Assembly (NCBI GenBank): GCA_964035545.1
Contig: OZ037768.1
Coordinates: 17,529,875 to 17,593,874 of the forward strand
Direction: 5' to 3'
Source: Bugula neritina
Lineage: Eukaryota; Animalia; Bryozoa
DNA: 64,000 nucleotides
The notes under the pieces were generated by a model that did not search any database, was not told the DNA's origin, and saw nothing but the letters and a program-made list of their open reading frames with translations. The position numbers and the translations under genes are program-made. Numbering within the stretch: the stretch's first letter is position 1; each line of letters starts with the position of its first letter. Shown here one piece after another: positions 9,101 to 63,669 of this stretch.

Positions 9101-10794
9101 GCAGAATGCCACTTCTCAACTCCATAGATGAGGACTACATATGTGAGCTGATGATACAGCTGGTACAACACGCACTCAGCATCAATTCTATGCAGTCTTC
9201 TTGGCTGAAAACCTATGCAGAAATACAGTTTGGTAATTTACTAATTTCTTACGGTTCACATTATTATAGTATCTTGATGAGTTATATACTGCCAAAGCAT
9301 TGTTTTTAAAAGTAGTATTATTTTGCACGTTCACCAAATCATGCGATGTTTCCTACTTGGTTCCACTAAATCTGCTTTACAGCTGTTGGTAATTTGAGAG
9401 ACGCCATGAAGTACTACCTGCAATCTGCTAATGTGGCAAGCAATAATTTCATGCAGCCAGTACCCTCATACGTGTTTGACAAGGAGGTAAGCCGTGTTCG
9501 TTATACTTCCTGTTTCCTTGGTTCATGAAGATGATGTTCTTGCTTGGATAGTGTGTACTAACCAGGTTGCTTACAGTAATAGTATTATGCTGATCTATTT
9601 ATCACACACTGTAGGTACATTTTACTAACTCAGAGATAGCCATGTTATTGTATGCTAGATTTTCTTAGCTGTGGGGTATTCTTTGTACAGAACTATTGCA
9701 GGTATATACTCGTATGGTGAAGTGTTGCGTGCAGCTGAAACAGTACACTCAGGCTGCAGTACTCTCTCAGCTGTTTGACGAACCTGATTATATGGCTACA
9801 TTCAAATACCTCCAAGAGAAAGAGTGCCATGATGGCATGGATATATACTATGACTACCTTTGGGACATTAACGTCATGGAATATCTCATACGTATCCTTT
9901 CTATTAATTGTTCTTCTAACTCATTTTTCTATTTAGTTTGGTTTAAGAAAGCAAAACGATTTAGTAATGTTTATGGAAGTAGTTGGTTTGGGTATGAACC
10001 AGGCACACTTCGTTCAGATCTGTGTATTGCTGTGCTTTCTATTGTCTAAATCGTCTTTAGAATTTGAGTACTATTTACTTCCCACTACTGTTGTCAACAT
10101 ATATAATCAATGTTAGAATATCAAGACTGCTAATTTTATTGACTTGTTTTCAGCTGTTCTTATCTCATAAGATCTAAGAATCCTAAAGAAAATGCTAGAT
10201 AATTGTTTTTGTTCAGTTACCTTGGGATTTCAAAGTTACCTTTTTAGTTAATGTATTACCTTTATTCATTAATTATTCAATCTTCACTCAAACAGATATA
10301 TGTTTTTTGGTCTTGGCATTATTATGCTTTCTCTTTTTTCCTCAACGCTAGTGATTTCAGATCTTCATGACAAAAGAGGAGAATTAGACAAGAAGCAACA
10401 ACTGGTGGGACAACTACTCAGCCTTATTATTTCTCTTCTGTATTAAAGAATGTTAACCTGGTTTTCGAATTTATACAGCCTTTGGAATACTTTATTGTAT
10501 CAAATGTTGGGAGATATTGTATGCATCCTCTAAAAGTTTATGGCAAGCGTAACATTTGCTGTTCTGCTTATGTTGGTGTATTTTTATCTCTATATGCTTT
10601 TACATTGTTTATCCTTTATAATACTCGCATCCACTGATCTGTTGTAGATTACAATTATAAGTAACCCGGAGATCAACACCAACAACCCCGAGCCTATTTT
10701 GCAGACTTGTAGGTCACAGAAAACAGCTAAATTTTTCCGATTGATGTGCAAACAATATGGCTACCAGGCTAAATCATTCAGCTTTTCTATTTGA
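105..10794 (+). CDS. INTS8: Integrator complex subunit 8, multi-exon, 5' end outside the window
   Basis: Spliced C-terminal exons read VYTRMVKCCVQLKQYTQAAVLSQLFDEPDYMATFKYLQEKECHDGMDIYYDYLWDINVMEYLI-HLHDKRGELDKKQQL-ITIISNPEINTNNPEPILQ...KFFRLMCKQY, matching the recalled INTS8 C-terminus (..DAMDSYYDYIWDVTILEYL.YLHHKRGE.DKRQ..ELNASNPEEVLQ). GT-AG exons chain in frame to a TGA at 10792-10794. Confidence 0.9.
1847..2149. mobile_element. hAT-like MITE in an INTS8 intron
   Basis: Degenerate termini CGGAGTTGTC.. / ..GACAGCCCTG, internal GAGGGCCACA-like subterminal motifs, and a near-perfect 8-bp flank duplication (GTATAGGA / ATATAGGA). Confidence 0.55.
2376..2583. mobile_element. Tc1/mariner (pogo/Tigger-like) MITE
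   Basis: TA-CAGTGCTCCCT ... AGGGAGCACTG-TA: perfect 11-bp TIR with TA target duplication. Confidence 0.75.
3097..3395. mobile_element. MITE with ~29-bp TIRs (PIF/Harbinger-like termini)
   Basis: CCCCTCATTCACACTTACCGTACCGTAGG pairs with the reverse complement of CCTGCGGTACGGCAAGTGTGGATGAGGGG. TSD is unclear. Confidence 0.6.
4870..5450 (-). mobile_element. Degenerate non-LTR retrotransposon 3' fragment (RTE-like)
   Basis: Minus-strand translation includes RRRWQWLGHICR, the typical post-RT motif of RTE-type LINEs. Frames are broken. Confidence 0.65.
6452..6912. mobile_element. Fold-back non-autonomous DNA transposon with TTAA TSD (Kolobok-like)
   Basis: ~220-bp inverted arms around a ~15-bp spacer; TTAA at 6448-6451 and 6913-6916; AG...CT termini. 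Confidence 0.75.
8733..8910 (+). repeat. 34-bp minisatellite (~5 copies) starting at an INTS8 5' splice site
   Basis: Unit GTGAGT(G/C)ATATAC(C/T)TTTCACTGTGTGCTAAACAT; unit starts at 8733, 8767, 8801, 8835, 8869 and 8905. Confidence 0.9.
9892..10360 (+). other. U12-type (minor spliceosome) GT-AG intron in INTS8
   Basis: 5' site GTATCCTTT; branch motif TTTCCTCAAC at 10337-10346, ~15 nt from the 3' AG. Removing it restores EYLI-H-LHDKRGE. Confidence 0.85.
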
Positions 10795-11693: not shown

Positions 11694-11765
11694 GGCTTGT
11701 TGGTCTAGGGGTATGATTCTCGCTTTGGGTGCGAGAGGTCCCGGGTTCAAATCCCGGACAAGCCC
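11694..11765 (+). tRNA. tRNA-Pro (TGG)
   Basis: 72-nt cloverleaf GGCTTGTTGGTCTAGGGGTATGATTCTCGCTTTGGGTGCGAGAGGTCCCGGGTTCAAATCCCGGACAAGCCC; anticodon stem CTCGC/GCGAG; followed by a T-run Pol III terminator. Confidence 0.97.
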
Positions 11766-18236: not shown

Positions 18237-18308
18237 GGCTTGTTGGTCTAGGGGTATGATTCTCGCTTTGGGTGCGAGAGGTCCCGGGTTCAAATCCCGG
18301 ACAAGCCC
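18237..18308 (+). tRNA. tRNA-Pro (TGG), second copy
   Basis: Identical to 11694-11765; T-run terminator follows. Confidence 0.97.
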
Positions 18309-19299: not shown

Positions 19300-20640
19300 C
19301 AATTCCGCTTTAGATTTATCAAGTGGCTGTATAATCTTTAAGAATTTAGGCAACTTATTCCACAATGCAGATATTACAAAATTGGAGGTGCGTTGACCAG
19401 CAAATGAGGAATAAAATGGAACAGGAAGAGATTGCAACTGATGACGAGTAGTATAGTGAGAGTGTGTTGAAAAGCTTCCTGAATATAGTAGATTTTAAGA
19501 GTTTTAATTAGCAGTTTGTACTTGTACAACTTGTCAACTGGTAAAATGTCTGATTTTCTGAACAGGTCTTTAGAATGGTATCCAAAAGGTGAATTATACC
19601 GACAATTTTCTTTTGAAATTTTATCACTCTATCAAGATGGACCCTGGATGCATTCCCCCATGATTCTATAGAGTACGTAGCACAGCCTGGAACATATAAG
19701 TGAATAGTATAACATAATCAAAAGTTTTTTAGGAGCATTTAAACGATAAAAAAGTCCTGAAATTGGTCGAAGATTTAATAATATTTTCTGAATGTGCAAT
19801 GACCGGTTTAAATTTCTATCAATTATCACACCTAAAAATTTTACTTCGTCAACTGCTGTTATTGGTTTGTCGTTTATTGTTAATTTTAAATCAAATTGGA
19901 ATTTATTTTGATATAGTTCTTAAAAGTAATGTAAGATGTTTTTTCATAATTAATTGTTAGCTTATTTATATCTGGCACTATTCCCATAGCCTTTTAAGAT
20001 CAAAAGAGATTTTCTCATATTCATTGTTTAAATTTTTTGATTTTAGAAGTAAGTTAATATCGTCAGCATATAACATTGGTGTTACATATTTTAAGGTTTT
20101 GCAAGGATTGTTGATATATATTAGAAACAAGGTGGGACCTAGCACAGATCCTTGGGGTACATCGCAAGTTATAGTTTGTGTATTGGATAGTGTATTGTTT
20201 ATTTTTGTGATTTGGGTTCTTTCCGTTAAATAATTATGCATCCATTTGATAGCAGATGAGCTAAAATTATATTTTTAAAGTTTATAAATTAAAATTTTAT
20301 GGTCTATAGTATCAAATGCTTTACTGAAATCAATAAATATGCCTATTACGGATTCACTTTTATCAAAAGATTCTAGAATTTTGTTTGTAAAGTTGGAAAT
20401 TGCGTCTGATGTACCCCTGTTATGTCTAAATCTAAACTGATTTTGAGCAAAGAGGTTATTGTTTCCTAAATGGGCCAGTATTTGTTGGTTTAATAATTTT
20501 TCCCATTACTTTGCTGAAGATGGGTATAATTGAAATAGGGTGATAATTTCCACATTCATTGATGGAACCTTTTTTATATAATGGTGAAACTTTAGCTATA
20601 CTTTTAATTGAGTTGGTATTTTTCCACAACCAATAAAATG
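19300..20640 (-). mobile_element. Degenerate CR1/Jockey-group LINE reverse transcriptase fragment
   Basis: Motifs IFIDFSKAFDTIDH, NYLTERTQ, VPQGSVLGPTLFLIYIN and YADD, with stops and frameshifts. Confidence 0.9.
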
Positions 20641-26655: not shown

Positions 26656-26682
26656 GCACACACACACATATATATATATATG
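26556..26682. repeat. Compound (TG)n-(CGTG)n-(CA)n-(TA)n microsatellite
   Basis: Directly visible; explains the ARTH/RACV ORFs. Confidence 0.97.
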
Positions 26683-27031
26683 TTGTCAATAGAAAAATAC
26701 AAGGCATAATTTTAATAAATTTATATTTTTTCTATATGGTTAAACATTTTTAAATTAATAAGTTGATTTTGCATGTTTTATTTCTAGAAAAAATGCCAAT
26801 TGTTTTTTTAACTAGTCATTGGTAAAATATAAATATAAATTCCTTTAACTGATAAATTATTCAAGTTAAATGAAAGCACTGAGAAACTTGTTTACTCTTG
26901 CTTTCTTTCATTCAAATTATTATAAAAAATCATCATGCACATACAACACTTATTTTCCTGTTGGTTTGTTTTTTGATAATTGTTATTCATTCATTCATTC
27001 ATTCTACGTTATTTATACTTTGTTGTGTAGA

Positions 27032-29057
27032 GGTAACAGCGTTGAGAGCTCAGATTTCAAAGATGAAACAGTACTCTCTGGTGCAGGAGAAAATCATCCG
27101 TGAGAGACAGAGAGACGAGTATAATGAACTGGTTCAGAACTTGTTCCACGCCTCAGGCCTCTGTTTAGAATGTTTATGTAAAAATCTTTTATGTATCCCT
27201 CAGTTTTTGTAATTTCAAATCAAAGTGAATCTTATCCCTAATTGCTCTGTATGTTTTTTTCGATCAATCAAGTGTGCTACACGAAAAATAAATAAAGCAT
27301 ACAAAGTCGAAAGTTTTAAACATTTGGCCATTTTATTACAAGTTTATAAATAACTTTATCATTCTTTCACAAAATAAAAGAATTGGAAGAGAAAGAGAGA
27401 CAGATGCAGGAACTAGAAGTTGAGCAGGAGAAGAATTTAAAGTTACATCTGATCACTCAGGAGGAGACAAAGCAGGATGCTAATGTGATAAAGAAACAGC
27501 TGCTGCATGAGAGGTACACAGGCTATTTATAGTTCAACAGATGGTATAGTATAGTAGAACTAATTTATGAGTAGTTATATACAAGTCTAACTGTTTGTAT
27601 CTGATAGAACCACTCCGTGAGTAGTCGAGTACAAATGTTAATATATATGGTAGAAACTAAATTAATTATTATTCCTATTGAAAAAAATTATTCTTTATAT
27701 TCAATATATTGATACAAAATATAATAATCTTAGTTTTGCTGTGAACAAATTTTAATTAAGCTTTGCTGTTATTTGTTATAGTTTTGTTATGTAAATTTTT
27801 ATGCTATTTGTAATTGGCAATTTTTGATAACATACATATACGGGTAGATTTATTTTTTGTCGACATTTAAGGAATTTTTTATTTTCAAAGAACCTGAAAT
27901 TGGGAGCATTTCACCGAGTTGACGAGCTACAAGCACTGGTTTATGATTATGGTGCACTTATTACCCACAATGCACAGTCTGTACAAGCTCACACTGCCCT
28001 GGGTACCATAAAAAATGGAATTAATTTGTCTTGTAAGTTTCAACTAATCAATGCTAACGTAAGAATGAGTGACATATATATTGTTTACTACCATAATTGA
28101 TAATCTCATATATTTCAAACTTCTGGCACTGTTTCTATTGAATCCATATCATTTTAAGCGTAAAATAAACATTTACTTTGCAGTTGATATTTTGCCAGAA
28201 AACTAATGCTAATTTCAGCCTCAGTTGTTCAAATAATTACGCTTTAGTTTGCTTCTAACAAGATCATAACAGATAAAACTCTCTTTTGTTATGAATGCCA
28301 TAGCCAACTCAGAAGTGGTTATGTTAGTTGAAGCTATCTCCTGTTATATATTTAGCAATGCTGCCTAGCAGACCCGTGTCAGCCGTGAGGTCATCTTCTG
28401 CTGCTCCAATCAAAATTCGAGCTGCCATTTCACCAGCAATACATGGCATATTATCTGACACCGGTGTGGCCAACACATCTGTTGCTCTACAGAGATCACC
28501 TAAAATGGTGAGTGGACTTGTGCATTACTTGAAACTTTTCTGTGGTTGGGTAAAAGTTGCTAGTCAACGGGACTATAGTTCTGAATCGCATTCGAAAAGT
28601 AGTTCTAAGTAATAAACCTTATGGCTTTCCATTTTTCTAGAAATGAAATTTGTCATAAAAAGTATTAGTTGGTGAGCAGTCTGAGATGTTTAGAGTTGTA
28701 TGCCCCTGTTTTAAAATTGCAAGTTAAATTTACAATCATGAGATTATAATGTTGGAAAGTAACCTCCATCTTATTCCAGCGTATTTGCTTATAATAGTAA
28801 TGTTTGACTAATTATGCAATCTGGAGTGTTTGGAGTTGCATGCCCTTGTTATAAACTTCCATCTTTAGCTTAATTTCTACATATTATCTTATCCCAGTTT
28901 ATTGGTTTATAATGATATTTTAATTATACAAACAACTGGTCCACTGACAAGGAGGCGAATTGCTGAACAATTTCTCAATGACCTTGAGAAAAGCCCTCAG
29001 GAAACATATGAAACTGTTCAAAAGTTGCACACGAAAAACATGACCTTCATGACATAA
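27032..29057 (+). pseudogene. Degraded 3' exons of a coiled-coil gene (CCDC162-like C-terminus, tentative)
   Basis: Exon-like blocks VTALRAQISKMKQYSLVQEKIIRERQRDEYNELVQNLF, ELEEKERQMQELEVEQEKNLKL..KKQLLHER, NLKLGAFHRVDELQALVYDY, MLPSRPVSA.., RRRIAEQFLNDLE. Several splice sites are missing or mutated and I found no 5' coding exons. Confidence 0.45.
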
Positions 29058-29638
29058 AGCAGTTTCCCCTTTATGACATCAAAACAACTACAGCAGAATT
29101 CTTCATGACATCACAAAGATCAGAGCTATTTGATTTGCATGACTTTTAGAGTAGAAGTTTTTACTACACCATTTGGCTGCAACCTTACAGATACAATGGC
29201 TCAGAAATAGTATATGTTTATCATATTTATTAATTTATTTATTAATGAACTATTTATTAAAAATATACGCATATAACAATCATCATAGCTGGATATATGA
29301 TAATATTTAGGCCTACTAGTAGTGTAGTTTTACGAATGCAAAACAAAAAATAACACATATATGTGAGCAGATATGGTAATACAAGTGTAATACAAGCTTC
29401 ATTTTCTGTTATGTAACTGAGGGTTCATTCACAGACTGTAGACTTTGTAAAAGTTTGGCACGTTAGATTGACTTCTAGCTTGGTAAAGCTCAACTTTTCA
29501 GTTTGGCTTCAGTTACAATTTATAGACGGGTTACAGAAATAACTAAAGTTTTGTCAGGAGAGATTTCTAGTTAATATAGTACAGTAAAACAGTTCAAGGT
29601 TGTGATATCCCATCCATTCCATAGTACCGATACATTCA

Positions 29639-32600
29639 TTACTGTAGGGAATCTTCTAGCTGCTTTTCAAGTATTTGGCAACGTTGGAGTAAATTACTGG
29701 CAAGTTCTTTTAATTCTCTGACTTGGTCTAATAAATATTTGGGCGAACAGTTTCCTTGAAGGTAAAGAGTTTTGCTTGGTAGAGGAATTGGCTGTGAGGC
29801 TGGTGCTTTTGTCATCTTTTTATACGTTGATAGTGTTTGCTTTGGGATTGTAGGAGTGAGTTGCTTTTTGTTTGGTGTTTCCTTTTGTTTCTGACATGTT
29901 CTCGTTTCATTTATCTGGTTTATCAGAGTCTTTGCGTTACTTAAATTTCTACAAGCACGCATCTTGCTTGTCTTGGTTTGAACAATTTTGATTTTCTTTG
30001 GACCAGGTCTTGAGTTTTTCTCTGTAAGCTTTGCTGCATTAGGTTGCCTTCGGATAAAAGACGTCTTTTCTGTTTTTGGTGGCTCGGTATTTTTTATTTG
30101 CATTTGAGTAGGTTGCTTGGTTGGTTTCAATGGACTTTTGACAGAATTTGTTGCATTTGCTTGGGATTTGAATTTACTCGCCATCGCACTTGTACCATTT
30201 CGTTTTGGCATTAGTGCTTTTCCTTTGGGGCTAAGTTTAGACAAGTTGGTAGCTGGAGGTACAGCTTTAAGTGGTTGAGTAGTGACTGGTCGTTTGTTGA
30301 TGTTAGACGGTGCAGTAGGGAACACTTTATTCTTTTTGGATCCTTTAAAGAAAGACCCGAAAGATGTCAACTTCTTTTTAAAGGATGACTTTGGAGAGAC
30401 CTTGGCTCTATGAGATACTGGCTGGGTTGGTGGAGCATATGATGTACTTGGTCCATCATTATTGTAGTATATTTTAGGAGAGATGGGAGTGTATTTGGTT
30501 AGATATCTATCCATCTCTTTTTTCAGCCAAACATATCCAGCAGCATCCTCTCTGTAAGTAGTTAAAAAATCACATAATTTTAGGGTCTCAGACTTCTAGC
30601 AACTTCAGCAGAAAAGCACCAAATGGAAACAAGTATAATGAGGAAACCAACATTATTCAGGCCACTAATCTGTTTTCATTTCAGTACAGTAGCTCAGTCT
30701 CTGTTGCAAAAACTGCCAATGCCATATTGACCTCCACAATTACAGGAGGAGACACCCTTATCTCTCAGAACAAAATTAGGCTAACAGTTACTTAGTAATA
30801 AAGGTATAGATTAATATAATATAGTAAAGCCATCAACAGACCTTTTATTTTCAGAGTTAGTATCAGAAACAAGAGTTTCATTTGACAGAGGGTAGCCATA
30901 AGCATCTCTCCCGTCACCATGGTTACCATTACTTGTCTCATTCCAGTGTTTTGGAGTTGTTCTACAGATAAAGCTTCAAAATTATTCTTGTTGTTTGCTG
31001 CGGAAAATATTATTTTTGTTTTGTAAATAGTTCACTTTGCAAAGAAATAGAGTTAGATCATTTTAATTGCTTTCTAGCTGTGCATTTTATATAATCAGAA
31101 CTTTCAGCCATTGTAAGCAATTTTTTGAGTAAAAAAATTTTTGTAGTGTACAGCATTAATTAAGATAGTTTTATATAAAGTTAACACAGTATATATATTC
31201 AACTCAAGGCTATATATTCAAATGGGATAATTTAAATAAGAAACTGTTGAACAGAATAACATAGGTTGTCACCTATCACTGGCTGAGTGGACGTTAGAGG
31301 AACTGTTTTCATAAGAAGCAGAATAGTTATATGAGTCATTCACTTTGCTGGTGAAAGCTACTTCAGTCAAGCATTTTCTGGGCACAGCTCTGTAAATAAG
31401 TTTAGCATAATAATTAGTCTACATAATGAATTCAAATATATTCTATATTGTATCATCTTGTGTCATTATATGGTTTTTAAATGTTGGTGTGAGCATGATT
31501 AGTTCATGAAACTACTGGTCTTAAAATTATCACTTCATGGTATATTCAAAAACATAAAAAAGCACCGAAGCTGAATTATCAAATCACCTTTCACCAGCAC
31601 AGATGTTGTGAGAGACAGAACTCTCTTGAGAAAGCAGATAGTCGTGTGGATTATTTCTTCTGCTGTTAGATCTATCACTCGTTTCAGTCCAGTAGTTACT
31701 TAGAACTATTCTGTTAATTATATTAATTGTATGTTTTGAATATCAAATTTACAATGTGGCAAGCTAATTTCCTATTCAGCCTTGGCTGATTTTCAAACTT
31801 TTTGCAAAGATATTATAATGTTTTTATGTTGTGCTTTTTTAACGCTTGTGGCAATAGCAAAGCTTTCTTTATAAATACAGCTACAAACATTTCGTTTTCT
31901 GTTGTCGCTAATCCTTGCAAATCATAACCAAATTCTAATAAGTTTTCCAATGAATTTTATTCAAAGTAAACGTTACAGCTAATTTGCAGCTATCTGCTTG
32001 ATCAACAACATAATTATGTGAAACTAGAAAATGTTCAAATATTCATTCACTTACCTTTTCTCTTGGGAGTTGTCCTCACTACTTGATCTCTTATAAGTTA
32101 TTTCACTGACCAACTGGTCACCATATTCAGGGTTGTAGCGATCATGTTGTTGATAAGATTCACCTGAGTTTATAACTTCAAGGAAAGTGGCAGGAGCCAA
32201 ACTACCAAATATATTACCCAGTGTTGAGTTATATACAAGCAGAATTTTGTAATATTAAATCTCATCCCATGCACAAGTTGTGTTTTCACATAAATCTTTT
32301 TGTATTAATTGCTCTCAACATAGGCCTTATACATGTAAAAATAATTTAGCATATCAAAATTTATATAATATAAACAAAATAAAATGAAGTTGATGAGTCA
32401 CCTTTCACCAGCAAAATACTCATCGGTTACGGAAATCTCATCAGAGAGCAGAGAGGTGAGAAGATAATTCCCTCTGTTAACCTTAGTCCAGTGTTTAAGA
32501 GGGGCTCTAAAGGTAACACACTCATGCAAATAGTCAATTCATGTTTATTTGTTTGAGAAATCAAGCAATAAGAACGTTTAGAGGTAAACACTTAGTTACA

Positions 32601-34510
32601 ATGAATTTAAGTATCTTTAGTTTTTTTTTATTCAACTGGTAAAATATGTTTAGCAGATTTTCCTACTTAATATCACAAAGTTTATAGTAATAATAACTTT
32701 ATTAGCTACAAAAATTTAAGCTTTTGAATTACCAATTAAATTATAGCTGCAGCTAGCTAATTAAAGCTCACCTTTTCCTTTGAGAGGTTTCATCACCAAA
32801 GCTTGGCATCTCATCTTGTGTGTCTCCATCTGTCACCTGTTCATTGCCATGTTGGTCATAGACACCTCTGGGTTCCACACACTCTCTATCATAAAACTCT
32901 CCAATATGTGGATCTCTTAAACCAGCCACTCGAGTTGACCTACTAGTCACATATATTTTACTCTTAATGGCAGTTTTGAAAAAATGTAATAAACAACAGT
33001 ATTTTGTGAAATACATTTGATAAAGTTTAGAAACTTTTGGTAACTTATGCATAGAAGACAACTATCAAAAGTTTTAACAAACATATAAAGAATTATAGAA
33101 GATTTTTCTCTTGATTTTATGTCACACCTTATATAATCTGATGATTAACTTATTATTTGATTTATGGAAAGCTCACCTTCCTGCATTAGCATTCAGTTTT
33201 TTGAGATCCTCTTCGGCAGCAAGTCTCCGGAGTAACTTGGTGTACCTCTCTATGAAATTCTGGCCCGGTACTTCTTCATTCACATCTTCTAGAAATGATC
33301 TGTAAGGACAGTTTAATTTCATGTAGCTAACTGCCTTAGTGTCTAGCTTCTGTCTAGAAAGTAACAGCTTTAGCTGCTCAAATGGCTATCAGAAAAAATT
33401 ATCTTCTTGTTGTAACAATAATGGAGTAGGTATACAACATGTGACCATGTTTCTATACATTATGCAGTTTCTTTGCTCATTGCCATACAAACGTTCTCTT
33501 CCGATTATAAATACTCATATATATGTAAGGAATACCAACTGTCGCTCATCTACAAACTAGTCTCACTCACTTAGAGTTACTAGTATCACTGGCACAGCTT
33601 CTATCATTAGTTAGCATTTCATCATTTTCAAGAGACAATCTTTCTTCACGGTCTCCATCAAATGACTTCATCCAACAGTATCTGGGGAAGCTCCTGTAAA
33701 CAAGCAAAAACATGTCATTATTTTCAAAATGTGGTCACAAAAGGATAAAACCAAATGCTAGCTAACTAAAAGGCTCAAACCAGACACTACCTTGGCTATA
33801 AAGACAAACGCTAACTCGTGTGCTGATCAGACGAAAGTTAGAGGCTTATGAAGTTCAGAGTTGTCATACCTCTGTTTAGTGTTGAGTCTCTTTCCATTGG
33901 ATAATTCTTCCTGTGCCACTTTGTACAGAGTCTGGTCATATGTGTCAGCAAATGCCTGAAAGAGCTCTTCAGACCTCTGGGAACTGCATTCAGCCAGGCT
34001 ATTAGGTTGAATAAGGTATATTTATAGAGACTCAGTATGTAAAATCATTGTAAGGTCAGATAAGCAGAAGTGGCTCATCTTGTCATCCAATGAATTTAAT
34101 AGTGTTCGGAAGTCACTGATAATTCATTAATTCATTAGAAATATGAAAATTTTCTTTTAATTTATAACTGACTTATAATGTTACATGGTAAATGAGATAT
34201 GTGTGATGGTGACCTTCGATATATTATGTAGTTTATAGGCAAAGATGAATAACTCATCACTTATAAAGATTGCTTGTCTCTGCAATATTGAAGGCCTATT
34301 TTATAACCTTTAGCACCCTAATTAAAGACAACTACTCAGGCTATACAGGCGTGTGTATGTACTAAATAACAAAACTGTAAAATACATTAACTAAGTATAG
34401 GGTGATCTCCTTATGTGGATACATATAAGAACTCTCTCGCACCTTTCTGTACTCAGATTTCTTAGTGGTACATTCCCAGCAGATGCTCTACTAAATATTC
34501 TTCCAAACAT
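29639..34510 (-). CDS. Unrecognised 11-exon protein, ~711 aa, built from symmetric phase 2-2 exons plus a basic low-complexity tail
   Basis: Exons 34443-34510, 33870-33998, 33571-33693, 33177-33299, 32772-32939, 32402-32506, 32055-32201, 31588-31710, 31273-31389, 30842-30961 and 29639-30551, all GT-AG and joining without stops (2136 nt). The 291-aa ORF in the track is the last exon. Confidence 0.8.
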
Positions 34511-35425
34511 GTTTCTCAGTGAGTCACCTGTAGATTGTAAATTGAGATGTCTTAAAACAGGTTTTCTACTTCAACAGTTCTCTAATATATGAATAGTTGT
34601 CTGAAACTTAGTCTTTTATGTTTATAGTGTTCTTATAAATAATTGACTACTAAATTGCTTCCAAAGTGTAAGCTGCTTGAGAAAAGTATTTAACAGTGAT
34701 TAGAAGTTTAGAGTTATTGCTGGAATCAGAACATGGCTTGAAATCTACAGAGTCTTCCATTGATTTCTTTGCAAAAATATTTTTTATAATAATAGAATTG
34801 CAAAAGATAAGTAAATTAAAACCAAATAATTGATATATGTTTGAAAAACTACTTGGTACTCACCTAACTGCAGGCAGTATGAGGAGATAACTCTAACTTT
34901 AATTTGTAGAAGTAATACAGTAAATATATAATAACAAGATACAGTAATAAGAGAACAATATTCAGCGCATAGGATTAGCATAAAATATGATAACTAGTTT
35001 TGACAGTAGAACAGGATAAAGTGAGAAATCGTGAGACTTCACAACAATCAATGATTATTAAGTTGTGTATTGTTGGCTTAATGGTACATTCCTGGTATTT
35101 TTTTAGTAATTATGGCTGCTAGTAAAAAGGAATTCACTTAAACTAATTGGTTACCTATTAGAATATTTCAATTTATAGTTGAATAAATTGTTGTACAATA
35201 ATTTAATGATCGATTATAAAAACCATAACATGTGAATAATTATTATATAAATGTTGGTTATGTTATACAATAATATTAAGTTTATAGTATTTTTTATTAG
35301 CAAAGCATTTTTTGGTTATAAAAGTGCAGAGTTGCTGTTGCTTTGATTAGCCTTAGTTTTAACACAATTATTGCTATTTCAGGTTATCTGGCTGGGTGGT
35401 GTGTTATAGTGTTGAGTTTACCTAC

Positions 35426-35497
35426 TGGTGCAATTTCGGCTATAGTGCGCCTGCTTGCAAGCCAGAGGTCTGTAGTTCGAATCCCAGTGGGGGCCAC
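35426..35497 (+). pseudogene. tRNA-Ala-like pseudogene or tRNA-derived SINE head
   Basis: GTGCGCCTGCTTGCAAGCCAGAGGTC..GTTCGAATCCC: B box present, anticodon arm imperfect, acceptor stem broken. Confidence 0.45.
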
Positions 35498-36214
35498 AAC
35501 TTTACAGATGCAGCTTTCCAAAATTATAATTTTTAAAATAGTTTTGTTTATATAACAACTTTTTTCTTAAGTCAAGTATACATGGCATACCAGTGTTTTC
35601 CACAGACTCTTTCTTAAATGTATCAGAATGATTGGCTTCTTAGCTACTTTACTACATTGCATAAATGTCCCTATGTATTGTGTATTATAAGTATTATGAT
35701 GGTAAACAGTTTATATGAAGAGAGCAGAGGCATTTTTTAAAAAACAACAACCACACTCATTTTCAAGAGATAATTTTATGTTTATATTTATTCTTTATAT
35801 TTATAATACAGTTTATTTAGTTATGGAAAGATTTACGTAAAACAAATACAAATATTGTTATGACTTATTATAGGTAGTAAATTATATATAATCAGTTTGT
35901 ACACTGATACAGTTTTACAAAATATGCCAACAATAAATAAAGTCTCTGTGAACTCTACAAAAAATAACTATGAAAGAAATTAAGTGGCTGTAGCTATACA
36001 TGATTAAGCAGTGAGTTATAACTAATCAAAATCATTATTTTAGGAAATACCAGTCAAAATTTAAAAAAACTGTCTTCATATAAAGTGATGGTTATGTATG
36101 ATCAACACAGGTAATCTAGCTGAATTCAAAGTTTAGAATCTTAAATTAATACTGTCTTGATAAATCACCATAGTATCTTGTAACTCCGTTAACGTGTAAT
36201 CAAAAAGTCATGCA

Positions 36215-36590
36215 GAAACAGCTCAGTAAACAACTCAGTTTAAAGAGAAAAGCCTGCAGTCCAAAGAGAGTTTAAATTGTTCAAACTAAGACAAGCAAGA
36301 TGCGTGCATGTAGAAATTTAAGTAACACAAAGACTCCGATAAACCAGATAAATCATGGAAACACCAAACAGAAACCAACACATCATTATGATCCTGAAAA
36401 AAGCACCAATGTACAGAAAGATGACAGACACCAGCCTAACAGCAGATTCCTCTACCAAACAAAACTCTGTTTCCTCAAAGAAACTGTTCATCCAAATATT
36501 TGTTGGACTAAGTCAGAGAATTAAAAGAACTTGCCAGTAATTTACTCCAATGTTGCCAAATACTTGAAGAGCAGCTAAAAAACTGCCCAA
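36215..36590 (+). pseudogene. Inverted, frameshifted copy of the last exon of the 29639-34510 gene
   Basis: IVQTKTSKMRACRNLSNTKTPINQIN and QVRELKELASNLLQ match the 291-aa ORF but lie on the opposite strand. Confidence 0.85.
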
Positions 36591-37925
36591 ATCTTGAAGA
36601 GATGAAAAGAAATTTCCAACAGTAATGGCTATGTTAGTATTGGCACCATGTTGTAGTGGATGAACTATATGATTAAGATGAACCAACATGCTATACAGAC
36701 TATAATATAACTCTGTTGACAAAACAGAATCACTAGATTTGATTTGGCAGGTGCAAATGCATTCTGACTTTAATTCTAGTTGACTTGGGACACCCTGCAT
36801 AAACAAAATAACACAAACACAAAGAATTATAAAAATCAGAAGAATTCTTTGCTAGAATTAAATTTATATCTTTATTCTTTAGTTACAATACTTGCATTTT
36901 TTAGTAAAGTTATAAGAGGTACGTATTCCTATAATGCATTTGTGTGATTTAACATGTCAAACATGCAATGTTCCATATGTTCTGTGAAAACATGACTGGG
37001 TATGTTTGACTAAAAAAAAAGATTGATGGATATCTGACCACATGTTCTCCAAACTCACCAAATGTCTATTTTGGCAACAAAGAGTCAAGCACATCATGGA
37101 CCTCAAAGAATAAAACAACATCACAGGCATTTGATGGAAACAATATTTCTCAAAAATTGTTTTTAAAAGAAAAATTAGCATCTTTTGAGTCTTTTCTTAC
37201 TGACCAACCTAGAAGAACTCAACTATTTTGCTGAGCATTATATAACTACAAAGCAACACTTAGGCCATATATCACTCAAAGGTACACCTATAGATTCACC
37301 AACTTTCTACACCTATGTCCCAAAAGTGTGCCTTAAAAGGGAAATGGTGTGACTGAGATGACACAAAAGTTTAAATCTCAAGCAAAAACACTGTTAGAAG
37401 TCAAAGAAGAAGTTCTAGTGTGCCAAATCATCTGAAAGTGTGTGGAAATAAACTTTTTAGAATCTGGAAGGATATAGCTAATCAATTGCAGCAAATAGAA
37501 AAAGTTTTGCATTGAATCATAAAGTCACATGCAAAAGACAAACCAGTTAAGGAAAAAAACCTTAATATCTAAAAACACTTTTTAATTGAAAACAAACAAA
37601 ATGCATGCTTTAAAAATGAAAGAAGCAATAATAAACTACAAATCAATAATATTATTAAACGGGGACCCAAACACACCCTACCACTCTTAAGATGAGGAAA
37701 CAACCAACAATGTCACAGCTAATTTTATTACTAAACAAAGCACTACTGGGTAAAGACTCTTGTCTGTATCTGCACATTTTTAAACCAAATAAATAGAGAA
37801 ACTAAGCTTTAGATAATTTACTGCAGCATTTTTGATAAGTTGAGTACATTCCAGGAGTTGCGTCTTTGTATCATAACCTACTATCAACTGTTTTGATATT
37901 AAAGAATGTTTGTAGTTGTCCTCAC

Positions 37926-39365
37926 TCCTTCATCTTTCCTCAGGGTTTACTTTATTCACTGCTTGATTGTCATAATCAAGGTCATACAGATACTAACCAA
38001 TCACGTTTGTAAAAGGTCCATCTTTTCTTCTAAGGAAATAATATAAATCATCATTAAAGAATAAATATATCCAAGTATTTACTGTATATATATTGCAATA
38101 AACAACACTGCGACATATACAGACATATCACTATAGAGTACTTTTATGTCAAGGTCTTAGTACTTAGTTATTCGTTTAATACTTTTTTATGCTCGATTTG
38201 TTAACAATTATATATAAAATATGGCATCAGTTGTTATATAATATAACATATATAAACATCAGTTATGAAAGTATAATGTGTGTATGTACTAGTTATTAAT
38301 ATAACTGTAAGGTAACTCAATGGGTTATTCTCATTATGTATATATAGGAACTCTCTCTCACCTTTCTGTACTCAGATTTCTTAGTGGTACATCCCCAGCA
38401 GATGCTCTACTAAATATTCTCCCAAACATGTCTGTCAGTCAGTCAACTACAGATTGTAAAAGACAATATAGAGCCAACAAAATAGTTGTTATTTCTTCTG
38501 TATAAATTAATAGTTTTTTTTAATTTACAAATAAAATGTTGCCCCATTTTTAAACTTTATGTTTGCTTAAGATATTATCTAGCGACAAATTTTAGCAGCA
38601 ATAGCTAGCTTTTTGCTGTTGAAAAGGCTATTAAAGCTCATTGCTATTTAATTGCTGGGTAAAAAGTCCGGGAAGCATATAAAAAATTTTTATATGGAGC
38701 AGCCATGATCTAAGGGTTACAGCACTGGCTTAGTAAACACTAAGTCATGGGTTCGAACATGCAGTAATGATGCTAGGAAGAGCATTCAGTCATAGTTGCT
38801 CCTGTGCCACATTCGAATAAGTCATTAGCCTGCTTTAAAAACCCTTTCCGTCAGGGGTTTTCTCACAGAGATATAGTGACTATATAATAAACTTGAGTGA
38901 GCTTTTATATATATAAAAGATTTTTTGTCCTTCTGTCTAAACAAAGCCATAACTTACCAAATCTGTGCTGGAACACATCTGATCTAAGTTGACGTATGCA
39001 TTTGCTGCTGCTTATAACTCATGGCTTTTTCTATGATGATGCTTTCGGTGCCTTTTCATAGCAGCAAATTAAATTTATTATTGTAGTGTCATATCGGAAT
39101 TTCTGCAGGATTTCTAGCTAAATCAGGCAGAGAGTGCTATACTATATTTCCTGCAGCTGCAATTCAACAACTTGTAATATATTAGTCCATGTGTAGAAGC
39201 GCAATACAGCCAATATTCAATAAGACACAGTAGTTACAAAATTAGCCTAAAATATTATATCTATAGCTTTGACAGTAAAACAAAATGAAACGAGAAATTG
39301 TGAGACTTGTAAACAATCAAAGATTATCAAATTATAGTGTATTGTTGACTTAATGATACATTCTT
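37926..39365 (-). pseudogene. 5' part of a paralogue of the 29639-34510 gene
   Basis: Exon 38362-38429 encodes MFGRIFSRASAGDVPLRNLSTE (one aa different). Region 39262-39365 matches 34995-35095. The next exon (37926-38029) contains in-frame stops. Confidence 0.75.
38697..38860 (+). mobile_element. Degenerate tRNA-derived SINE
   Basis: A-box-like ATGATCTAAGGG, B box GGTTCGAAC, then AGGAAGAGCATTCAGTC, which resembles the AGGAAGGGCATCCGGCC core of many invertebrate SINEs. Confidence 0.4.
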
Positions 39366-42300
39366 GTAATTATTATTTTATTCTTGACCAGCCAACAGAA
39401 TAATGTTTGATCAATAAAATAGCTTAAACTTTACAGAAAGGCAAAAATATTTTGTCATTTTTCTTTGTGAACAAATTATCAATTCGCATGAGAAAAGTGC
39501 ACAAACTAGTGAAAAAAGTCTAATGATCTGTCGTAAAATTATTTAATTTATCATCAAACATTTGTTTTGCAAAATCACGTACATTTAGGTGCATGTTAAC
39601 TTGTCTCAATTACTGCCGATTAAAAAAGATTTGAGTTTTTCTCACTTTTCATTAATGCAGTCTAACATAAAATTAATTGCCGAAAAGAATTACTGCACTA
39701 CACATAAGGAACTCTTGGCAGTAATCAAGGCAATGAAACACTTCAGGCCCTATCTGTGCGGCAGAAAGTTCCGGCTGCGTACGTACTATGCCTCATTGAT
39801 TTAACTGTGTAAGAGAGCGAAGCCCACCAGTCAGGTTGCCCGGTGGCTCAAAATGCTGGCTGAATTTTTTAAACCGGATCGAACACCGACCCGGTAAGAA
39901 ACATGGCAATGCAAACGGGTTGAGCCAGCGACCAGATGGAGGGTGTAAGCAGTGTCTTGGCATCAAGAAGAGAGATGAAAGTTCCTCACGATCCGAGTTA
40001 GAGACACTGCCTGGCTACAAAGCAGAGTACAGCTGAGAGCACGGCCGACTGGCGCCGGCGGCTGATAAAGGTGCGGGGGCTGTGCAGACCCCCGTGCTAA
40101 CCCCGTTGTGGCCGATAACGTCTCTGAAAAAAAAGCTGCAGGAGAACCTTCCTGGGGTGGTATCTAACGTGTATCAGGCCAAGAGAGACGAGAGACAACT
40201 CAGTGAGGAACAGCTGAAGCAGAGTTGCACCGAGTTCCGACTATTCTGCCATTGCTGGGACTCCTTGTGGATCAACAGGAATGAACTTCTGATAATCACA
40301 TTGGCCACCAGCGGCAGACCTCCTGAGCGGGAATGGGTGGTCTGCCAGGCTGCTATCCGCCAAGAGTTAATTTGGAACACTCATAAGCAGGCCCATGCAA
40401 GGGTTCAGAGGGTGATCGCTAAATTGCAACTCCGGTGGTATTGGCCTAAGAGGGGGCGTGAAATGCGGCTCTAAGTGAGACAGTGCGAGATCTGCCAGGC
40501 CAGTAAGCATGGTCGTCTCCCTGGTGAAGCGGGACAGCAAAGGTAATATGCTGGCTGGCTCTGGCAAGTGGTAGCTGTCGATCTGGTCGACCCCATGCCC
40601 TCAACACCCCGTGGCAACAGTTGGATCCTAGTACTCACAAACCACTTTACTAGGTAGGCCGACGCCCTGGCTATCCCAGACTCGTCGGCTCCGACTGTGG
40701 CCCGAGTTTTGGATCAGAATGTATTCTGCTACTTTGGCCTCCCTGAGCAGATACATTCGGACCAAGGCGCTCAGTTCCAGTCTCAACTAATGAGTGACCT
40801 CTGTCGCCTCTGGGGAGTGAACCAGAGCAGGACTACCTTGTACCATCTACAAGGTAACAGGGTGGTAGAGTGCAACAATCGTATGTTGGGTGATGTGCTC
40901 CGGAGCCTGCTCCTCGGCCGCGATCAAGAAGAATAGGATACGGTGCTTGCGCAGGTCATGCGGGCTTACTGCAGCACTTCACACACCAGTACTGGTGAAA
41001 CTCCCAACTTCTTGATGCTCGGTCAAAAGACCCAGGTTCCCGACCACCTCACCTACCATGTTCCTGACCAGGATAACTCTGTCCATGAGTATGTGGGGGG
41101 AGCTGGTAGAACGTATAAAGGCCGCACACAAAATGCTTCGAGAGAAGCAATGGCAGGTGCAGACTGAGGACTCTGATGAGCTTCCCCTCTATCAGGTGGG
41201 GGACTGGGTCTGGATGGCCAACTACCGTAGGCGACGCGGACAAGCGGCTAAACTACAGCTCAAGTTTGTGGGGCCCTACCTGGTGGTTGAGGCTGTGCCC
41301 AACCACACATACAAGATCAAGCGCTCGGGACAGGCATCCATTCAAAACGAGGCTCGCTTGAAGCTGTATTGGGCTAGCCTCGATGCGGTATTTAAAGCGC
41401 CCCCATTGCTTGAGCCCAGGCGGCAGACCGCAACGCGCGAGCAGAAATGGTACCGACCCGAGTATCAAGTGGTAGTGCCACAGGAAGAAGATCTGGTAAG
41501 AGATGAGCAACCACCTCCACCAACGAAAGTGCGTCTACTGCCTCCGATGCCAGATCCAATGCCGTCATTTCCGGGACCCGAGCCGGGCCCTCAAATGGAG
41601 ACCCCCACAACGGGGGGTGGGAACCTCACTGTAGGAAACCGAGGTGAAGTCAAAACGGGGCCGCTCATGTCAGAGCCGGTAGCTCCACCCATGGAACTCT
41701 CGAGTCCACTCGCCTTTTTTGGAGAGAGGTCAGCGTACTGGACAACCCCCTCTTATTTCCAAGACTTTGTGTGTGACTGCGTAAAAAGAGGCAGATCAAA
41801 AAGTCAAACGGAAGGCTCCGCAAAAAATTGCCGCGTCCCACCTAGGAGTTGTGAGCTCAATGAATATATTGACTTTTGTGAAGGCGGAGCAACAAAAAGA
41901 ATTAATCGGCCAGTTGTGAAGTGCCTCAGTCACGCACAACGAACATGTTGTTCAGTCTTTTTTTACGCTGATGCAGTTAAGAGCAGACGAGCTAGTAGAT
42001 ATCCAGTATAATCATTCCCAGTTATTCGAGTATTTCACGTAATACCGAGTCACGGGCTAAGTTTATATAATATTCTTCTAGTACGGAAATAAATTGACAT
42101 CAGCTTAGCTCTGAGCTCAGTTTGATAAACACATTCTGACTAGAGATAAGACTAGTAGAGAAAAGTGACGAGAACTTGAAAAGATAGAAGGGTAGTTGTG
42201 ATCCTAAGTTATAATTCATTGTTCTCGGTCAGCCTCTATACTAGTACTAATCTCGCGAGTGCTTCACCGAAAGGGAGTCGTACTTCCAGGCTGTTAAAAG

Positions 42301-42453
42301 CCGGCTGTACTAGAGTGTGTATCTAGGTCTAGCATGATCTAACGCTAGTCTGCTCTTTCAGGTGTCACTCAACTTGCTACCACAGGTGCGTCTCAGACAT
42401 TCCTTTCTGTTTGGTCTAGCGATCACGCACCCAGTCAACCTCCTTCCTCTCTA

Positions 42454-43157
42454 ATGGACTTCGAGGATGAGGAATTGCCAGCGCCCTTCCACCGTCGATG
42501 GCGGTGGGTATCACCAGCCACAGATCAAAAGATTGAGGCCGCTTGGGGCCCTAGTGGGAGCACCGTGTGTCAGTTATGTCATGAATCCTCAGCGTTCATC
42601 CGCTCATTAAAAGCACACGTGGACACTCATTATTTACTAGTTTTCTGTCTTTGCGGATACCTCGATGTCCACTCCTATGCTGTCTCGGAACACCAGGCGT
42701 GGACTGATTGTTATTTAGGAGTCACCTTTACAGTTGACGCGGATAACTATCCTGATTTCTTCGATGTTATTTGTCCACTAGTCTACAAGGGTATGCTCAT
42801 GGCCGTCCTCTCTCAAGGGTTCCCACTACTGCAGGAGAACGCAGTCTATTGATCTTGCATTTCCGATAGCACTAGACAAGCTGAGCCAACTCCTCCACCA
42901 ACCAAACGAACAGCTCGAAGAGTTACAGAAGATGAAGTGGATTTATCCCCCGCAAACCTCCTGCCACAGCTGAGTGTCCTAGCCGCCTGTCTAATGTGGA
43001 ACATAGGCTTCAGCGGTTACAGGTTGGCTTTGGCCAGCTGGCACTCCGGCTCTTGGCCGCCACTACTGGAATATATCAATTAAAAGATTCGGTGGGCCGC
43101 ATTAAACAGAAACTTTGTATCCACAAATCCAGGTCCGGTTCGTACCAAGCTAAATGA
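42454..43157 (+). pseudogene. Accessory ORF inside the Gypsy element: zinc-finger-like motifs plus C-terminal coiled coil (one stop, one frameshift)
   Basis: CQLC-x12-HVDTH and CLC..H motifs. Beyond the TGA at 42850 and a frameshift, it reads LSNVEHRLQRLQVGFGQLALRLLAATTGIYQLKDSVGRIKQKL to a TGA at 43155-43157. Confidence 0.7.
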
Positions 43158-43394
43158 ATAAGCCCTATTTCGAGCATATATCTGTGGGGCATGTTTTTCC
43201 TGCTTCACTCAATAGACGGCGTTATGTTCATGTACTTAACAATCCTTTTCTTATCTGTTCTAATATCGTACTAATACTGATATATCTGTGTGTTGCTTCT
43301 CTTTATGCATATGTTTGTCATTTTATTGTATTATTGTATCATGTTTTTGCCATTCTTCTTTTTTATCAGAAAGTGGGCTTTCTACTGGTGGGGG

Positions 43395-62800: not shown

Positions 62801-63669
62801 GGTGGCTCAATATAACAAATATTTTGAGTTTGAAATATCCCTTGAAGTCTAAACTAGAACTTTATTGATGTGCAGTTCATAAAACATAACTTAAGCTATA
62901 CATGCAACCTGTGTTACATGCTGATTGTGGAGTTTACCTGCCTATAAGTTTTTGCAATTGTATGGAGAAAGTAATTCCCGATATATGTTACTTTCATTTT
63001 CATATTTTGTTGAAGTTTTATGAGGAGCTGAGAAGTACAATACTGAAAGGCCATGATGAGCTGCTGGATGGGTTTTCAGCTTTCTTGCTACCCGCCCAGG
63101 CTCTTGCCTGTGGAGTCAAGTGCTATAAATCTTGCTTGCAGTTTCATCAGGCAAGAAAGTTTCTCAGGAAATTGGAGGTATAGTATAACACACATAGTAT
63201 AGTATAATACTATGTGTATTTTGTTACATCAAATTAATTGAAATACTGTTTTATCAAAATATTAAACAATTTACTGAGAGTTAATTTTGTAAAATTAATT
63301 TCATTCTTAATTTTTATTCGGAGTTCTAAGTTGCTTTTATTTTTTTTTAGTACGAAGTATAATCTACGTATTTCAATATACATGACTTGGCGTTTAAATG
63401 ACTATATAAGATTTATTTATTGAAATTTCGCTCTTAACTGAAAAAGTGGCTAAATAGATATTCTACTGTTTTGGTTGGCAGGTGTACTTCGGTGGAGCGA
63501 CTAAAACTTTTCAGAAATTAATCAAATTGCTTAGTTCCGGCAGCTCACAAAATGCTGCCTCTGTGACTATATCTGACATTCGAGATTCTATAACTGCTAT
63601 TCTCAAAGGACACCCTGCACTACTCAAAGATTTCACTAGTTTCTTCCCTGATGCCACTCCAGCTAAAAG
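47832..63669 (+). CDS. GON4L: GON-4-like protein, multi-exon, continues beyond the window
   Basis: Conserved blocks in order: [113 protein letters not shown], and PAH-type ILKGHDELLDGFSAFLLPAQALACG and ILKGHPALLKDFTSFFP. The start ATG is tentative. Confidence 0.9.
51937..52416 (+). repeat. 24-bp minisatellite with a 48/51-bp dimer higher-order unit, in a GON4L intron
   Basis: Alternating GTACTAACTGACAAAGAGTATATA and GTACTCACTAGTAAAGAATATATA, ~20 units. Confidence 0.95.
53342..53600 (+). repeat. 32-bp minisatellite (8 copies) spanning a GON4L intron/exon boundary
   Basis: Unit TCATATGTTTGCATGTTCAG|ACCACTGATGAG; the last copy supplies the in-frame acceptor (exon starts 53586). Confidence 0.95.
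56624..56710 (+). repeat. Short 21-bp tandem repeat (~4 copies)
   Basis: CATACA(A/G)T(G/A)CTAACTCTACTG units. Confidence 0.75.
57976..60008 (+). repeat. ~2-kb 21-bp satellite in a GON4L intron
   Basis: Unit GTTAGTGTGAGAGTAGATGTA, roughly 95-100 copies, with recurring GCTAG/GTGAG variants and occasional 4-nt-deleted units; explains the SVRVDVV ORFs. Confidence 0.98.
60662..62107 (-). CDS. Class A (rhodopsin-like) GPCR, FMRFamide/sex-peptide-receptor-like group, nested antisense in a GON4L intron; ~363 aa (exons 62069-62107, 60662-61714)
   Basis: Seven hydrophobic segments; GN (TM1), LAVAD (TM2), TM3 Cys, IPF (TM5), NHSINFFLYC (TM7), KFR helix 8. The upstream exon MSSINSSELVNEE (NSS glycosylation sequon) splices in phase 0 to AYWNAVTSD. 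Confidence 0.92.

Follow-up and report, generated by a model that had tools for sequence, protein, structure and literature searches.

An orphan Bugula neritina gene bearing the footprint of exon duplication, with a predicted, mostly disordered product

Gene model and splice structure

The window analysed is a 64,000-nucleotide stretch of the Bugula neritina genome (assembly GCA_964035545.1, contig OZ037768.1, positions 17,529,875 to 17,593,874). An 11-exon gene lies on its minus strand, from 34510 to 29639, with a product of 710 residues (Table 1). The start codon has an A at position -3, and exon 1 is conserved in a paralogue (see below) and in a further copy, L013. An AG located 17 nt upstream of the ATG is also conserved, which suggests a further non-coding 5' exon; we infer both expression and the exact 5' end of the gene from the sequence.

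All ten introns (176-444 nt) are of the GT..AG type and in phase 2, and the upstream exon ends in AG|GT in nine cases, with exon 3 (AA|GT) as the exception. The nine internal exons each have a length divisible by 3 and phase 2-2, and so form a contiguous frame-symmetric set, any member of which could be skipped in frame. The codons at the junctions are, in order, S, R, K, R, R, S, R, R, R and R; they are all Arg, Lys or Ser, as follows from phase-2 reading of AG|R at each splice site. KR pairs occur at junctions e5/e6, e7/e8 and e10/e11, and the junction after exon 5 reads RKR. The coordinates thus bear out a first-pass annotation of this DNA as to exon sizes, uniform phase 2, AG|GT ends with one exception, three dibasic KR junctions and the possibility of in-frame skipping. 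Phase 2 accounts for about one in five introns in animals, a rate at which ten independent phase-2 introns would arise by chance with a probability of about 1e-7, although the exons here are not independent.

Table 1. Features of the gene and of the surrounding duplicated block (window coordinates)
Feature	Position	Strand	Description
Coding exon 1 (e1)	34510-34443	-	68 nt from ATG at 34510; ends AG|GT
Exon 2 (e2)	33998-33870	-	129 nt, phase 2-2
Exon 3 (e3)	33693-33571	-	123 nt, phase 2-2; diverged A module, start P-R-x-C-W
Exon 4 (e4)	33299-33177	-	123 nt, phase 2-2
Exon 5 (e5)	32939-32772	-	168 nt, phase 2-2; acidic B exon
Exon 6 (e6)	32506-32402	-	105 nt, phase 2-2; A module
Exon 7 (e7)	32201-32055	-	147 nt, phase 2-2; acidic B exon
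Exon 8 (e8)	31710-31588	-	123 nt, phase 2-2; A module
Exon 9 (e9)	31389-31273	-	117 nt, phase 2-2; A module
Exon 10 (e10)	30961-30842	-	120 nt, phase 2-2; A module
Exon 11 (e11)	30551-29642, TAA stop 29641-29639	-	302 full codons after junction Arg
Three AATAAA motifs	29226-29258	-	383-410 nt past stop codon; candidate polyadenylation signals, by motif match alone
Duplicated block, ~13 kb	26681-39655		also at C4:21.61-21.63 Mb, same chromosome; 76-85% nucleotide identity
Second copy of coding exon 1	38362-38429	-	ATG and GT donor; 66/68 nt identical
Exon 11 relics, inverted, scrambled, stop-ridden	36231-37405	+	residues 174-300 at 36231-36583, residues 1-138 at 36986-37405

The duplicated block contains both the gene and its relics. 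Its second copy of exon 1 may be either an older tandem duplication relic or, possibly, an alternative first exon.

The same gene is represented in GenBank by hypothetical protein EB796_001461 (assembly GCA_010799875.2, contig VXIV02000164.1), which has no annotated function and belongs to a lineage that has diverged within the Bugula neritina species complex. The VXIV02000164.1 DNA, from this independent assembly, carries every one of the 11 exons in intact form, and the splice sites of the annotated CDS match those of the window gene. The deposited model, an AUGUSTUS prediction in an annotation that drew on transcriptome hints, is partial: it begins inside exon 3, lacks exons 1, 2, 6, 8 and 10, and joins e5-e7, e7-e9 and e9-e11. 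Its 3' end is wrong, with the middle of exon 11 joined to an unrelated downstream exon, and its exon skips may be predictor errors because both of its ends are wrong. It matches exon 11 with 76% identity over 68% of that exon, and its exon 11 carries a 13-residue unit in tandem triplication. The gene had initially been considered undescribed, which this partial deposited model contradicts.

Repeated modules and exon duplication

Five internal exons share one module (A). Exons 6, 8 and 10 are mutually related (p <= 0.0025, composition-preserving shuffles), exon 9 joins them by profile comparison (E 2e-4 to 9e-4), and the first half of exon 3 joins the module profile in register (E 0.0014), beating all 150 column shuffles. 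Exons 6, 8, 9 and 10 can be aligned along their full length, and exon 3 along its first half. The module, ~38 acidic and Ser-rich residues long, has a conserved Trp close to its beginning and an L-S-x-E core; the Trp is replaced by Leu in exon 9 and kept in the other four. The similarity between exons 2 and 4 (observed score reached in 1/150 shuffles) is suggestive of their being copies of each other, and that between exons 5 and 7 (9/150 shuffles) is a weak indication of the same. The proposal that the gene contains diverged exon copies is therefore correct, and its extension to a two-exon duplication of pairs 5-6 and 7-8 stands for exons 6 and 8 but is weak for exons 5 and 7.

A DNA-level self-comparison revealed no intron similarity between module exons, which argues that the exon duplications are old. 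Serial duplication leads to a uniform intron phase, and the uniform 2-2 exon phase is the footprint of gene assembly by exon duplication; given the weak homologies of e2/e4 and e5/e7, the duplication demonstrated covers part of the phase-2 introns. Unequal recombination within introns multiplied a frame-symmetric exon of ~120 nt, corresponding to module A, into exons 3, 6, 8, 9 and 10; e2/e4 probably, and e5/e7 perhaps, arose likewise.

Paralogue, copy number and selection

A paralogue 4 Mb away retains all 20 splice sites, and its exon lengths are equal to those of the window gene apart from one in-frame 3-nt insertion. Indel events between the two number 44 in 2738 nt of intron and at most two in 2131 nt of exon (P = 2e-9). 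The dN/dS against the paralogue is 0.36 overall and 0.04-0.10 in exons 3 and 4 (0.04 in exon 3); exon 4 is the best-conserved exon, with 95-100% identity among copies. Substitution identity between the window gene and the paralogue is not higher in exons than in introns, and the argument for constraint is therefore built on indels, splice sites and dN/dS.

Three independent full-length copies preserve the 11 frames and 20 splice sites; neither the window gene nor the paralogue nor L013 shows a premature stop, a frameshift or the loss of a splice site. The frame of exon 11 is open in five copies, with pairwise dN/dS of 0.26-0.49 and one pair at 0.78. No dN/dS above 1 and no hypervariable module was found among the compared exons and copies, and selection on the gene, as judged from these comparisons, is relaxed purifying rather than diversifying. 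These ratios, including those of exons 3 and 4, do not fit the earlier description of the gene as fast-evolving. A genome search with exons 2, 4 and 11 and the module profile found no family members beyond the two loci, and the module profile does not occur elsewhere in the genome, so that the gene family previously envisaged amounts to two copies per genome. In a tree of the five copies, the window gene and L014 are separated from the paralogue, L013 and L011, with distances that differ too little to place the gene duplication before or after the split of the lineages. On this comparative evidence, the locus is a genuine, functional protein-coding gene, one of two paralogues.

Homologue searches

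A phmmer search with exon 11 against 1.84 billion representatives returned five matches, all Bugula-like fragments, and word-index searches with exon 11, EB796_001461 and the exon 4 frame returned solely Bugula records. Neither the individual exons nor EB796_001461 matched a Pfam family at E <= 1, and a PDB sequence search gave no match. The ESM Atlas gave no match by features; its structural neighbours (TM <= 0.22, for a model with pLDDT 0.39) are meaningless. A DUF4556 hit on a Bugula exon 11 fragment (13 bits against a cut-off of 27) was dismissed as noise. The searches were run exon by exon or with the partial model EB796_001461, and queries of ~40 residues have little power. The gene is thus recognisable in the Bugula neritina species complex alone, which may be a matter of sampling, with unannotated bryozoan genomes lying outside the collections. 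These results agree with its original designation as unrecognised; the homologue searches, together with selection on the frame, class it as a lineage-restricted (orphan) protein-coding gene.

Predicted protein properties

Exons 2-10 each encode a net acidic segment (-1 to -7), and exon 11 has a net charge of +43. The AlphaFold2 model of EB796_001461 has a mean pLDDT of 41.5; within the parts belonging to this gene it contains one helix, in exon 4, which is the sole helix predicted in the N-terminal half, and three others fall in the mis-joined 3' end. Hydrophobic periodicity, read by eye, suggests that exon 2 may form a helix. Exon 11 is predicted to be disordered except for helix 4-20 and a confident helix 270-301 (pLDDT 83-93), a layout of a short helix, ~250 disordered K/P/T/S-rich residues and, at the C terminus, a leucine-zipper helix of four heptads, in which Leu is read at every seventh residue four times. 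The basic K/P/T/S-rich tail and terminal coiled coil noted in the first-pass annotation are both recovered, and the protein as a whole is predicted to be mostly intrinsically disordered.

No signal peptide was indicated by a hydropathy scan, used in place of a dedicated predictor (maximum 19-residue hydropathy in exon 1, 0.15), and no hydrophobic or membrane segment was found in any exon (maximum 0.47). The protein is thus predicted to be cytoplasmic or nuclear and non-secreted. With neither a signal peptide nor a hydrophobic segment, the protein is unlikely to have an extracellular role, such as the one in gamete or recognition biology suggested earlier, or to be processed at its KR sites in the manner of a prohormone. 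A prohormone reading of the KR junctions was dropped; the Arg at the junctions follows from the AG|R splice consensus being read in phase 2. Other candidate assignments were also rejected. A bZIP reading of the zipper finds no Pfam match, and the residues before the helix that starts at 270, where a bZIP would have its basic DNA-binding helix, are modelled as non-helical (258-266, pLDDT <50); the 50-residue block containing these residues has a net charge of 0. A Tau-like reading of the tail finds no Pfam family at E <= 1 for exon 11 or EB796_001461, including the PF00418 tubulin-binding repeats. SxIP, RVxF and LIR motifs, judged by eye, gave no convincing match.

Interpretation and alternatives

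We assign a probability of about 0.8 to the reading of the locus as a functional, Bugula-limited gene with two paralogues, built by exon duplication and encoding a 710-residue, mostly disordered cytoplasmic or nuclear protein. We infer a scaffold function from composition, predicted disorder and one helix. The protein would be a dimeric, multivalent scaffold, in which the C-terminal leucine zipper would pair two chains and the +43 K/P/T/S-rich tail would bind a polyanion, e.g. microtubules or nucleic acid. The acidic array would present five repeated Trp-centred docking or phospho-regulated motifs and may also fold back onto the basic tail. Skipping of exons in frame is possible and would set the number of modules. 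It is doubtful that the A-module exons act as a valency dial, in which regulated skipping of exons 6, 8 and 10, as in EB796_001461, or of other subsets would yield scaffolds graded from one to five Trp-centred docking motifs; if they did, bryozoans would have a way of their own to tune an intracellular assembly from one life stage or zooid type to another.

A duplicate that is decaying or has no function, or mis-modelled open frames that resemble exons, would account for the similar substitution identities of exons and introns and for the degenerate relics of the gene just upstream. Such a reading is very improbable given the frames and splice sites kept in three full-length copies, the frame of exon 11 open in five, the rarity of indels in exons and the dN/dS of 0.36; the true upstream relics are, by contrast, full of stops. 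A CD44-like interpretation, in which the nine symmetric exons serve as combinatorial cassettes that yield many isoforms for recognition or gamete biology, draws on the fact that any subset of them could be skipped in frame, and on the transcriptome-hinted EB796_001461, which omits exons 6, 8 and 10 although they are intact in its DNA. The same model, however, also misses exons 1 and 2 and has a wrong 3' end, and its skips may be errors of prediction. Surface recognition is at odds with the lack of a signal peptide or membrane segment, diversification with dN/dS <1 throughout and no hypervariable module, and a gene family with the presence of only two genes in the genome. Duplicated symmetric exons are, moreover, usually constitutive, and combinatorial use is considered quite unlikely here.

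The gene could also be a highly diverged member of a known animal family, e.g. a microtubule-associated or chromatin protein that has an acidic projection domain and a basic tail, whose disordered sequence has drifted past detection. A charge-bipolar layout that combines a basic, K/P/T/S-rich stretch with a coiled coil at the end is common in microtubule-associated and nuclear proteins. Disordered proteins quickly lose detectable similarity, and the exon-by-exon and partial-model queries leave room for a missed relationship. Against this, exon 11 matched nothing beyond Bugula in 1.84 billion representatives, Pfam (E <= 1), PDB and ESM Atlas yielded nothing for the queries used, and even the best-conserved exon, exon 4, matched solely Bugula contigs; distant membership is thus unlikely. 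As in MAP2/Tau/MAP4, small symmetric exons encode an acidic N-terminal part, which is followed by a basic Pro/Ser/Thr/Lys-rich region, but there is no tubulin-binding repeat by Pfam and a C-terminal leucine zipper is found instead. By sequence, the gene is not a member of that family.

Comparison with other exon arrays

Few animal phyla have been studied as little at the gene level as Bryozoa. The favoured reading, an exon-duplicated orphan gene, provides a clean record of a lineage-restricted gene assembled from one small symmetric exon, with two copies kept under selection, and corrects a partial, mis-joined public gene model. As it stands, this is an ordinary though tidy case of exon duplication in an orphan gene; if the exons were combined variably, it would offer a compact model for motif-number tuning in a disordered scaffold.

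The array resembles the CD44 variable region in being an uninterrupted run of about ten symmetric exons, each 100-170 nt long and skippable in frame. The variable exons of CD44 code for a membrane protein's extracellular stalk and are documented to be used variably, whereas the Bugula protein is predicted to be non-secreted and its exon array is known here from genomic sequence.

Titin PEVK exons, treacle/TCOF1 repeat exons and SCPP genes encode disordered proteins that arose by serial symmetric-exon duplication. The Bugula gene is like them in having one repeat unit per exon, exon lengths in multiples of 3, equal flanking phases, and low-complexity disordered sequence with quickly diverging repeats. 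It differs in taxon, has five module copies only and shows no sequence relationship to them. Its exons are 2-2, the rarest class of symmetric exons, in contrast to 0-0 or 1-1 in titin PEVK, TCOF1 and SCPP.

Gene structure and the origin of its uniform intron phase

The window spans C4:17.53–17.59 Mb and carries the gene on its minus strand, in a genome totalling 216,009,554 bases; the published B. neritina assembly is described as 216.00 Mb in nine chromosomes (PMC11480708). Translation and splice-site mapping define 11 coding exons, e1–e11, that begin with an ATG at 34510, end with a TAA at 29641–29639 and encode a protein of 710 residues (700 full codons and 10 junction codons). The internal exons are 129, 123, 123, 168, 105, 147, 123, 117 and 120 nt in length, and all ten introns (176–444 nt) are of the GT..AG type and of phase 2. 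The lengths and phases match exactly those in the first-pass annotation, which was made from the sequence alone. Its further claims on the splice junctions also hold: the upstream exon ends are AG/GT in nine of ten cases and AA/GT in one, three junctions form KR, and the junction codons (S, R, K, R, R, S, R, R, R and R, in order) are Arg or Ser apart from one Lys.

Recombination within introns would copy a symmetric 2-2 exon, and such copying would propagate phase 2 through the gene. In this phase, the AG/R splice consensus makes the junction codon AGR (Arg), or else AAA (Lys) or AGY (Ser), so that the Arg and Ser residues at the junctions, like the KR pairs, are by-products of the splicing signal. 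The KR pairs were therefore rejected as evidence of processing sites.

Internal repeats

The gene was made by serial duplication of one symmetric exon. Exons 6, 8 and 10 are mutually related in single-sequence shuffles (p ≤ 0.0025), and exons 6, 8, 9 and 10 align end to end when profiles built from the gene copies are compared (E 6e-4 to 0.03). An alignment of twelve sequences (A1) delineates a module of ~38 residues, in which Trp is nearly invariant at position 7 and the core reads L-S-x-E. Exon 3 fits the module profile in register over its first half, with an E-value of 0.0014 and a score above 150 of 150 column shuffles. The shuffles and profile comparisons thus bear out the five-module series (exons 3, 6, 8, 9 and 10) that had been proposed from the sequence alone. 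The similarity between exons 2 and 4 is suggestive (score reached by 1 of 150 shuffles) and that between exons 5 and 7 only weak (9 of 150); a proposed two-exon duplication of 5-6 into 7-8 consequently stands for exons 6 and 8, but not for their partners. No similarity is left between the introns of the module exons, and the 11-exon plan is common to both paralogues; therefore, the exon duplications are older than the gene duplication. Searching the whole genome with the module profile retrieved only eight exons, four per gene, and searches with exons 2, 4 and 11 found the two gene loci only, so the suggested gene family comprises two genes rather than a large set.

Evidence for a selected coding gene

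The same chromosome carries the second copy at a distance of 4 Mb, within a segmental duplication of ~13 kb (26681–39655 in the window). Base-by-base alignment showed that 20 of 20 splice sites are kept between the paralogues and that exon lengths are the same, except that exon 3 differs by a single 3-nt insertion, which keeps the frame; what looks like a 5-nt insertion where exon 9 ends is a duplicated donor inside the paralogue's intron. Exons and introns have similar substitution identities. The introns (2738 nt) contain 44 indel events and the exons (2131 nt) at most two (P = 2e-9). The dN/dS ratio is 0.36 overall and 0.04–0.10 in exons 3 and 4. Each of the five available copies of exon 11 has an open frame, and their dN/dS is 0.26–0.49, apart from one pair at 0.78. 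All 11 exons are intact with canonical sites in an independent GenBank assembly, and the annotated GenBank CDS has the same junctions. Together, the sequence comparisons are good evidence for a selected protein-coding gene. The dN/dS values between gene copies give no sign of diversifying selection, contrary to the earlier suggestion of fast evolution.

Homology searches

Searches were run exon by exon, the public record P0008 being the sole full-length-type query. The closest database sequences are the hypothetical protein EB796_001461 of B. neritina and JGI metagenome contigs that bear the label AY690838, under which the B. neritina mitochondrial genome is deposited. These differ from the window by 9–17% of nucleotides, a divergence that fits an origin in other lineages of the B. 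neritina species complex. A phmmer search of 1.84 billion representatives with exon 11 gave five matches, all fragments from Bugula-type genomic contigs, and word-index searches (exon 11, P0008 and the exon-4 frame) returned Bugula records only. Pfam, PDB and Atlas gave no match, and the gene is indeed unrecognised, as had been noted. No homologue was found outside Bugula in these collections, which hold no other bryozoan genomes, with 40-residue queries of low power; within that scope the two-copy gene is lineage-restricted.

Predicted protein properties and function

The 19-residue hydropathy maximum over all exons is 0.47; since no exon contains a hydrophobic stretch, neither a signal peptide nor a membrane segment is predicted. 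Exons 2–10 are each acidic (net charge −1 to −7), with combined Ser and Thr contents of 13–29% in acidic exons 3 and 5–10, and exon 11 has a net charge of +43 and a pI of 10.3. AlphaFold2 modelled the public partial protein with a mean pLDDT of 41.5 and with only one helix in its genuine part, in exon 4; for this protein, the ESM Atlas gives a model with a pLDDT of 0.39. Exon 11, folded from a five-sequence alignment, is predicted to be disordered except for a weak helix at 4–20 and a confident helix at 270–301 (pLDDT 83–93). The latter, with Leu at every seventh residue four times, is a short leucine zipper, in agreement with the C-terminal coiled coil noted at first. The predicted protein is thus non-secreted, mostly disordered and charge-bipolar, with a terminal zipper.

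Tentatively, such a protein might act as a dimeric multivalent scaffold, whose basic tail would bind a polyanion and whose acidic array would display repeated Trp-centred motifs. The first-pass annotation, correct on the duplicated symmetric exons, had placed the gene in recognition or gamete biology; a recognition or gamete-surface role appears unlikely because the protein lacks a secretion signal. Combinatorial splicing, also proposed there, is possible, as any internal exon could be skipped in frame. Its sole hint is the GenBank model, produced by AUGUSTUS with transcriptome hints, in which e5-e7-e9-e11 are joined; however, e1 and e2 are absent from that model and its 3' end is false, so these joins prove nothing.

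Upstream relics and surroundings

Upstream of the gene, ~0.75 kb of DNA was duplicated along with exon 1. The additional exon 1 could serve as an alternative first exon; at the paralogous locus its ATG is lost (ATA). Gene conversion is suggested by residues that are specific to one locus and common to both of its exon-1 copies. Both the GenBank contig and the paralogous locus show the exon 11 relics in the same arrangement, so the relics are old; together with the second exon 1, they appear to record an older tandem duplication. An exon 11 copy on a GenBank B. neritina contig with the full-length gene (L013, 12924–13913) has a 13-residue unit (YYNNDGPSTSYA-type) repeated three times in tandem, which makes the exon ~28 codons longer; thus, exon 11 length differs between lineages. 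The window is animal DNA and not of human origin, with a G+C content of ~33% and introns of 0.2–0.4 kb.

Features of the window outside the coding exons of the gene
Feature	Position	Strand	Description
Segmental duplication	26681–39655		
Upstream duplicated DNA	34351–35102, 38278–39374		
Second coding exon 1	38429–38362	-	ATG and GT donor intact; 66/68 nt same as exon 1
Exon 11 relics	36231–36583, 36986–37405	+	Inverted, permuted (C-terminal half before N-terminal half), several stops
Gypsy-type retroelement	~39600–43200	+	Exactly at segmental duplication end; 54% G+C (33% around); integrase zinc-binding and Tf2-type SH3 domains
Non-LTR element	19981–20274	-	Reverse-transcriptase fragment
tRNA-Pro(TGG), two	11694–11765, 18237–18308	+	Equal scores; 6.5 kb between
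Integrator subunit 8 exon	9669–10046	+	TPR_INTS8, E 2e-26
Minisatellite, ~2 kb	57900–60050		Plus strand nearly C-free (GC skew 0.98); translates as repeated VRVDVVS units
Rhodopsin-family 7TM receptor match	60665–61717	-	351-residue single-exon open frame; Pfam 7tm_1, E 1e-19
Sin3-like gene	62890–63670	+	Two paired-amphipathic-helix (PAH) repeats
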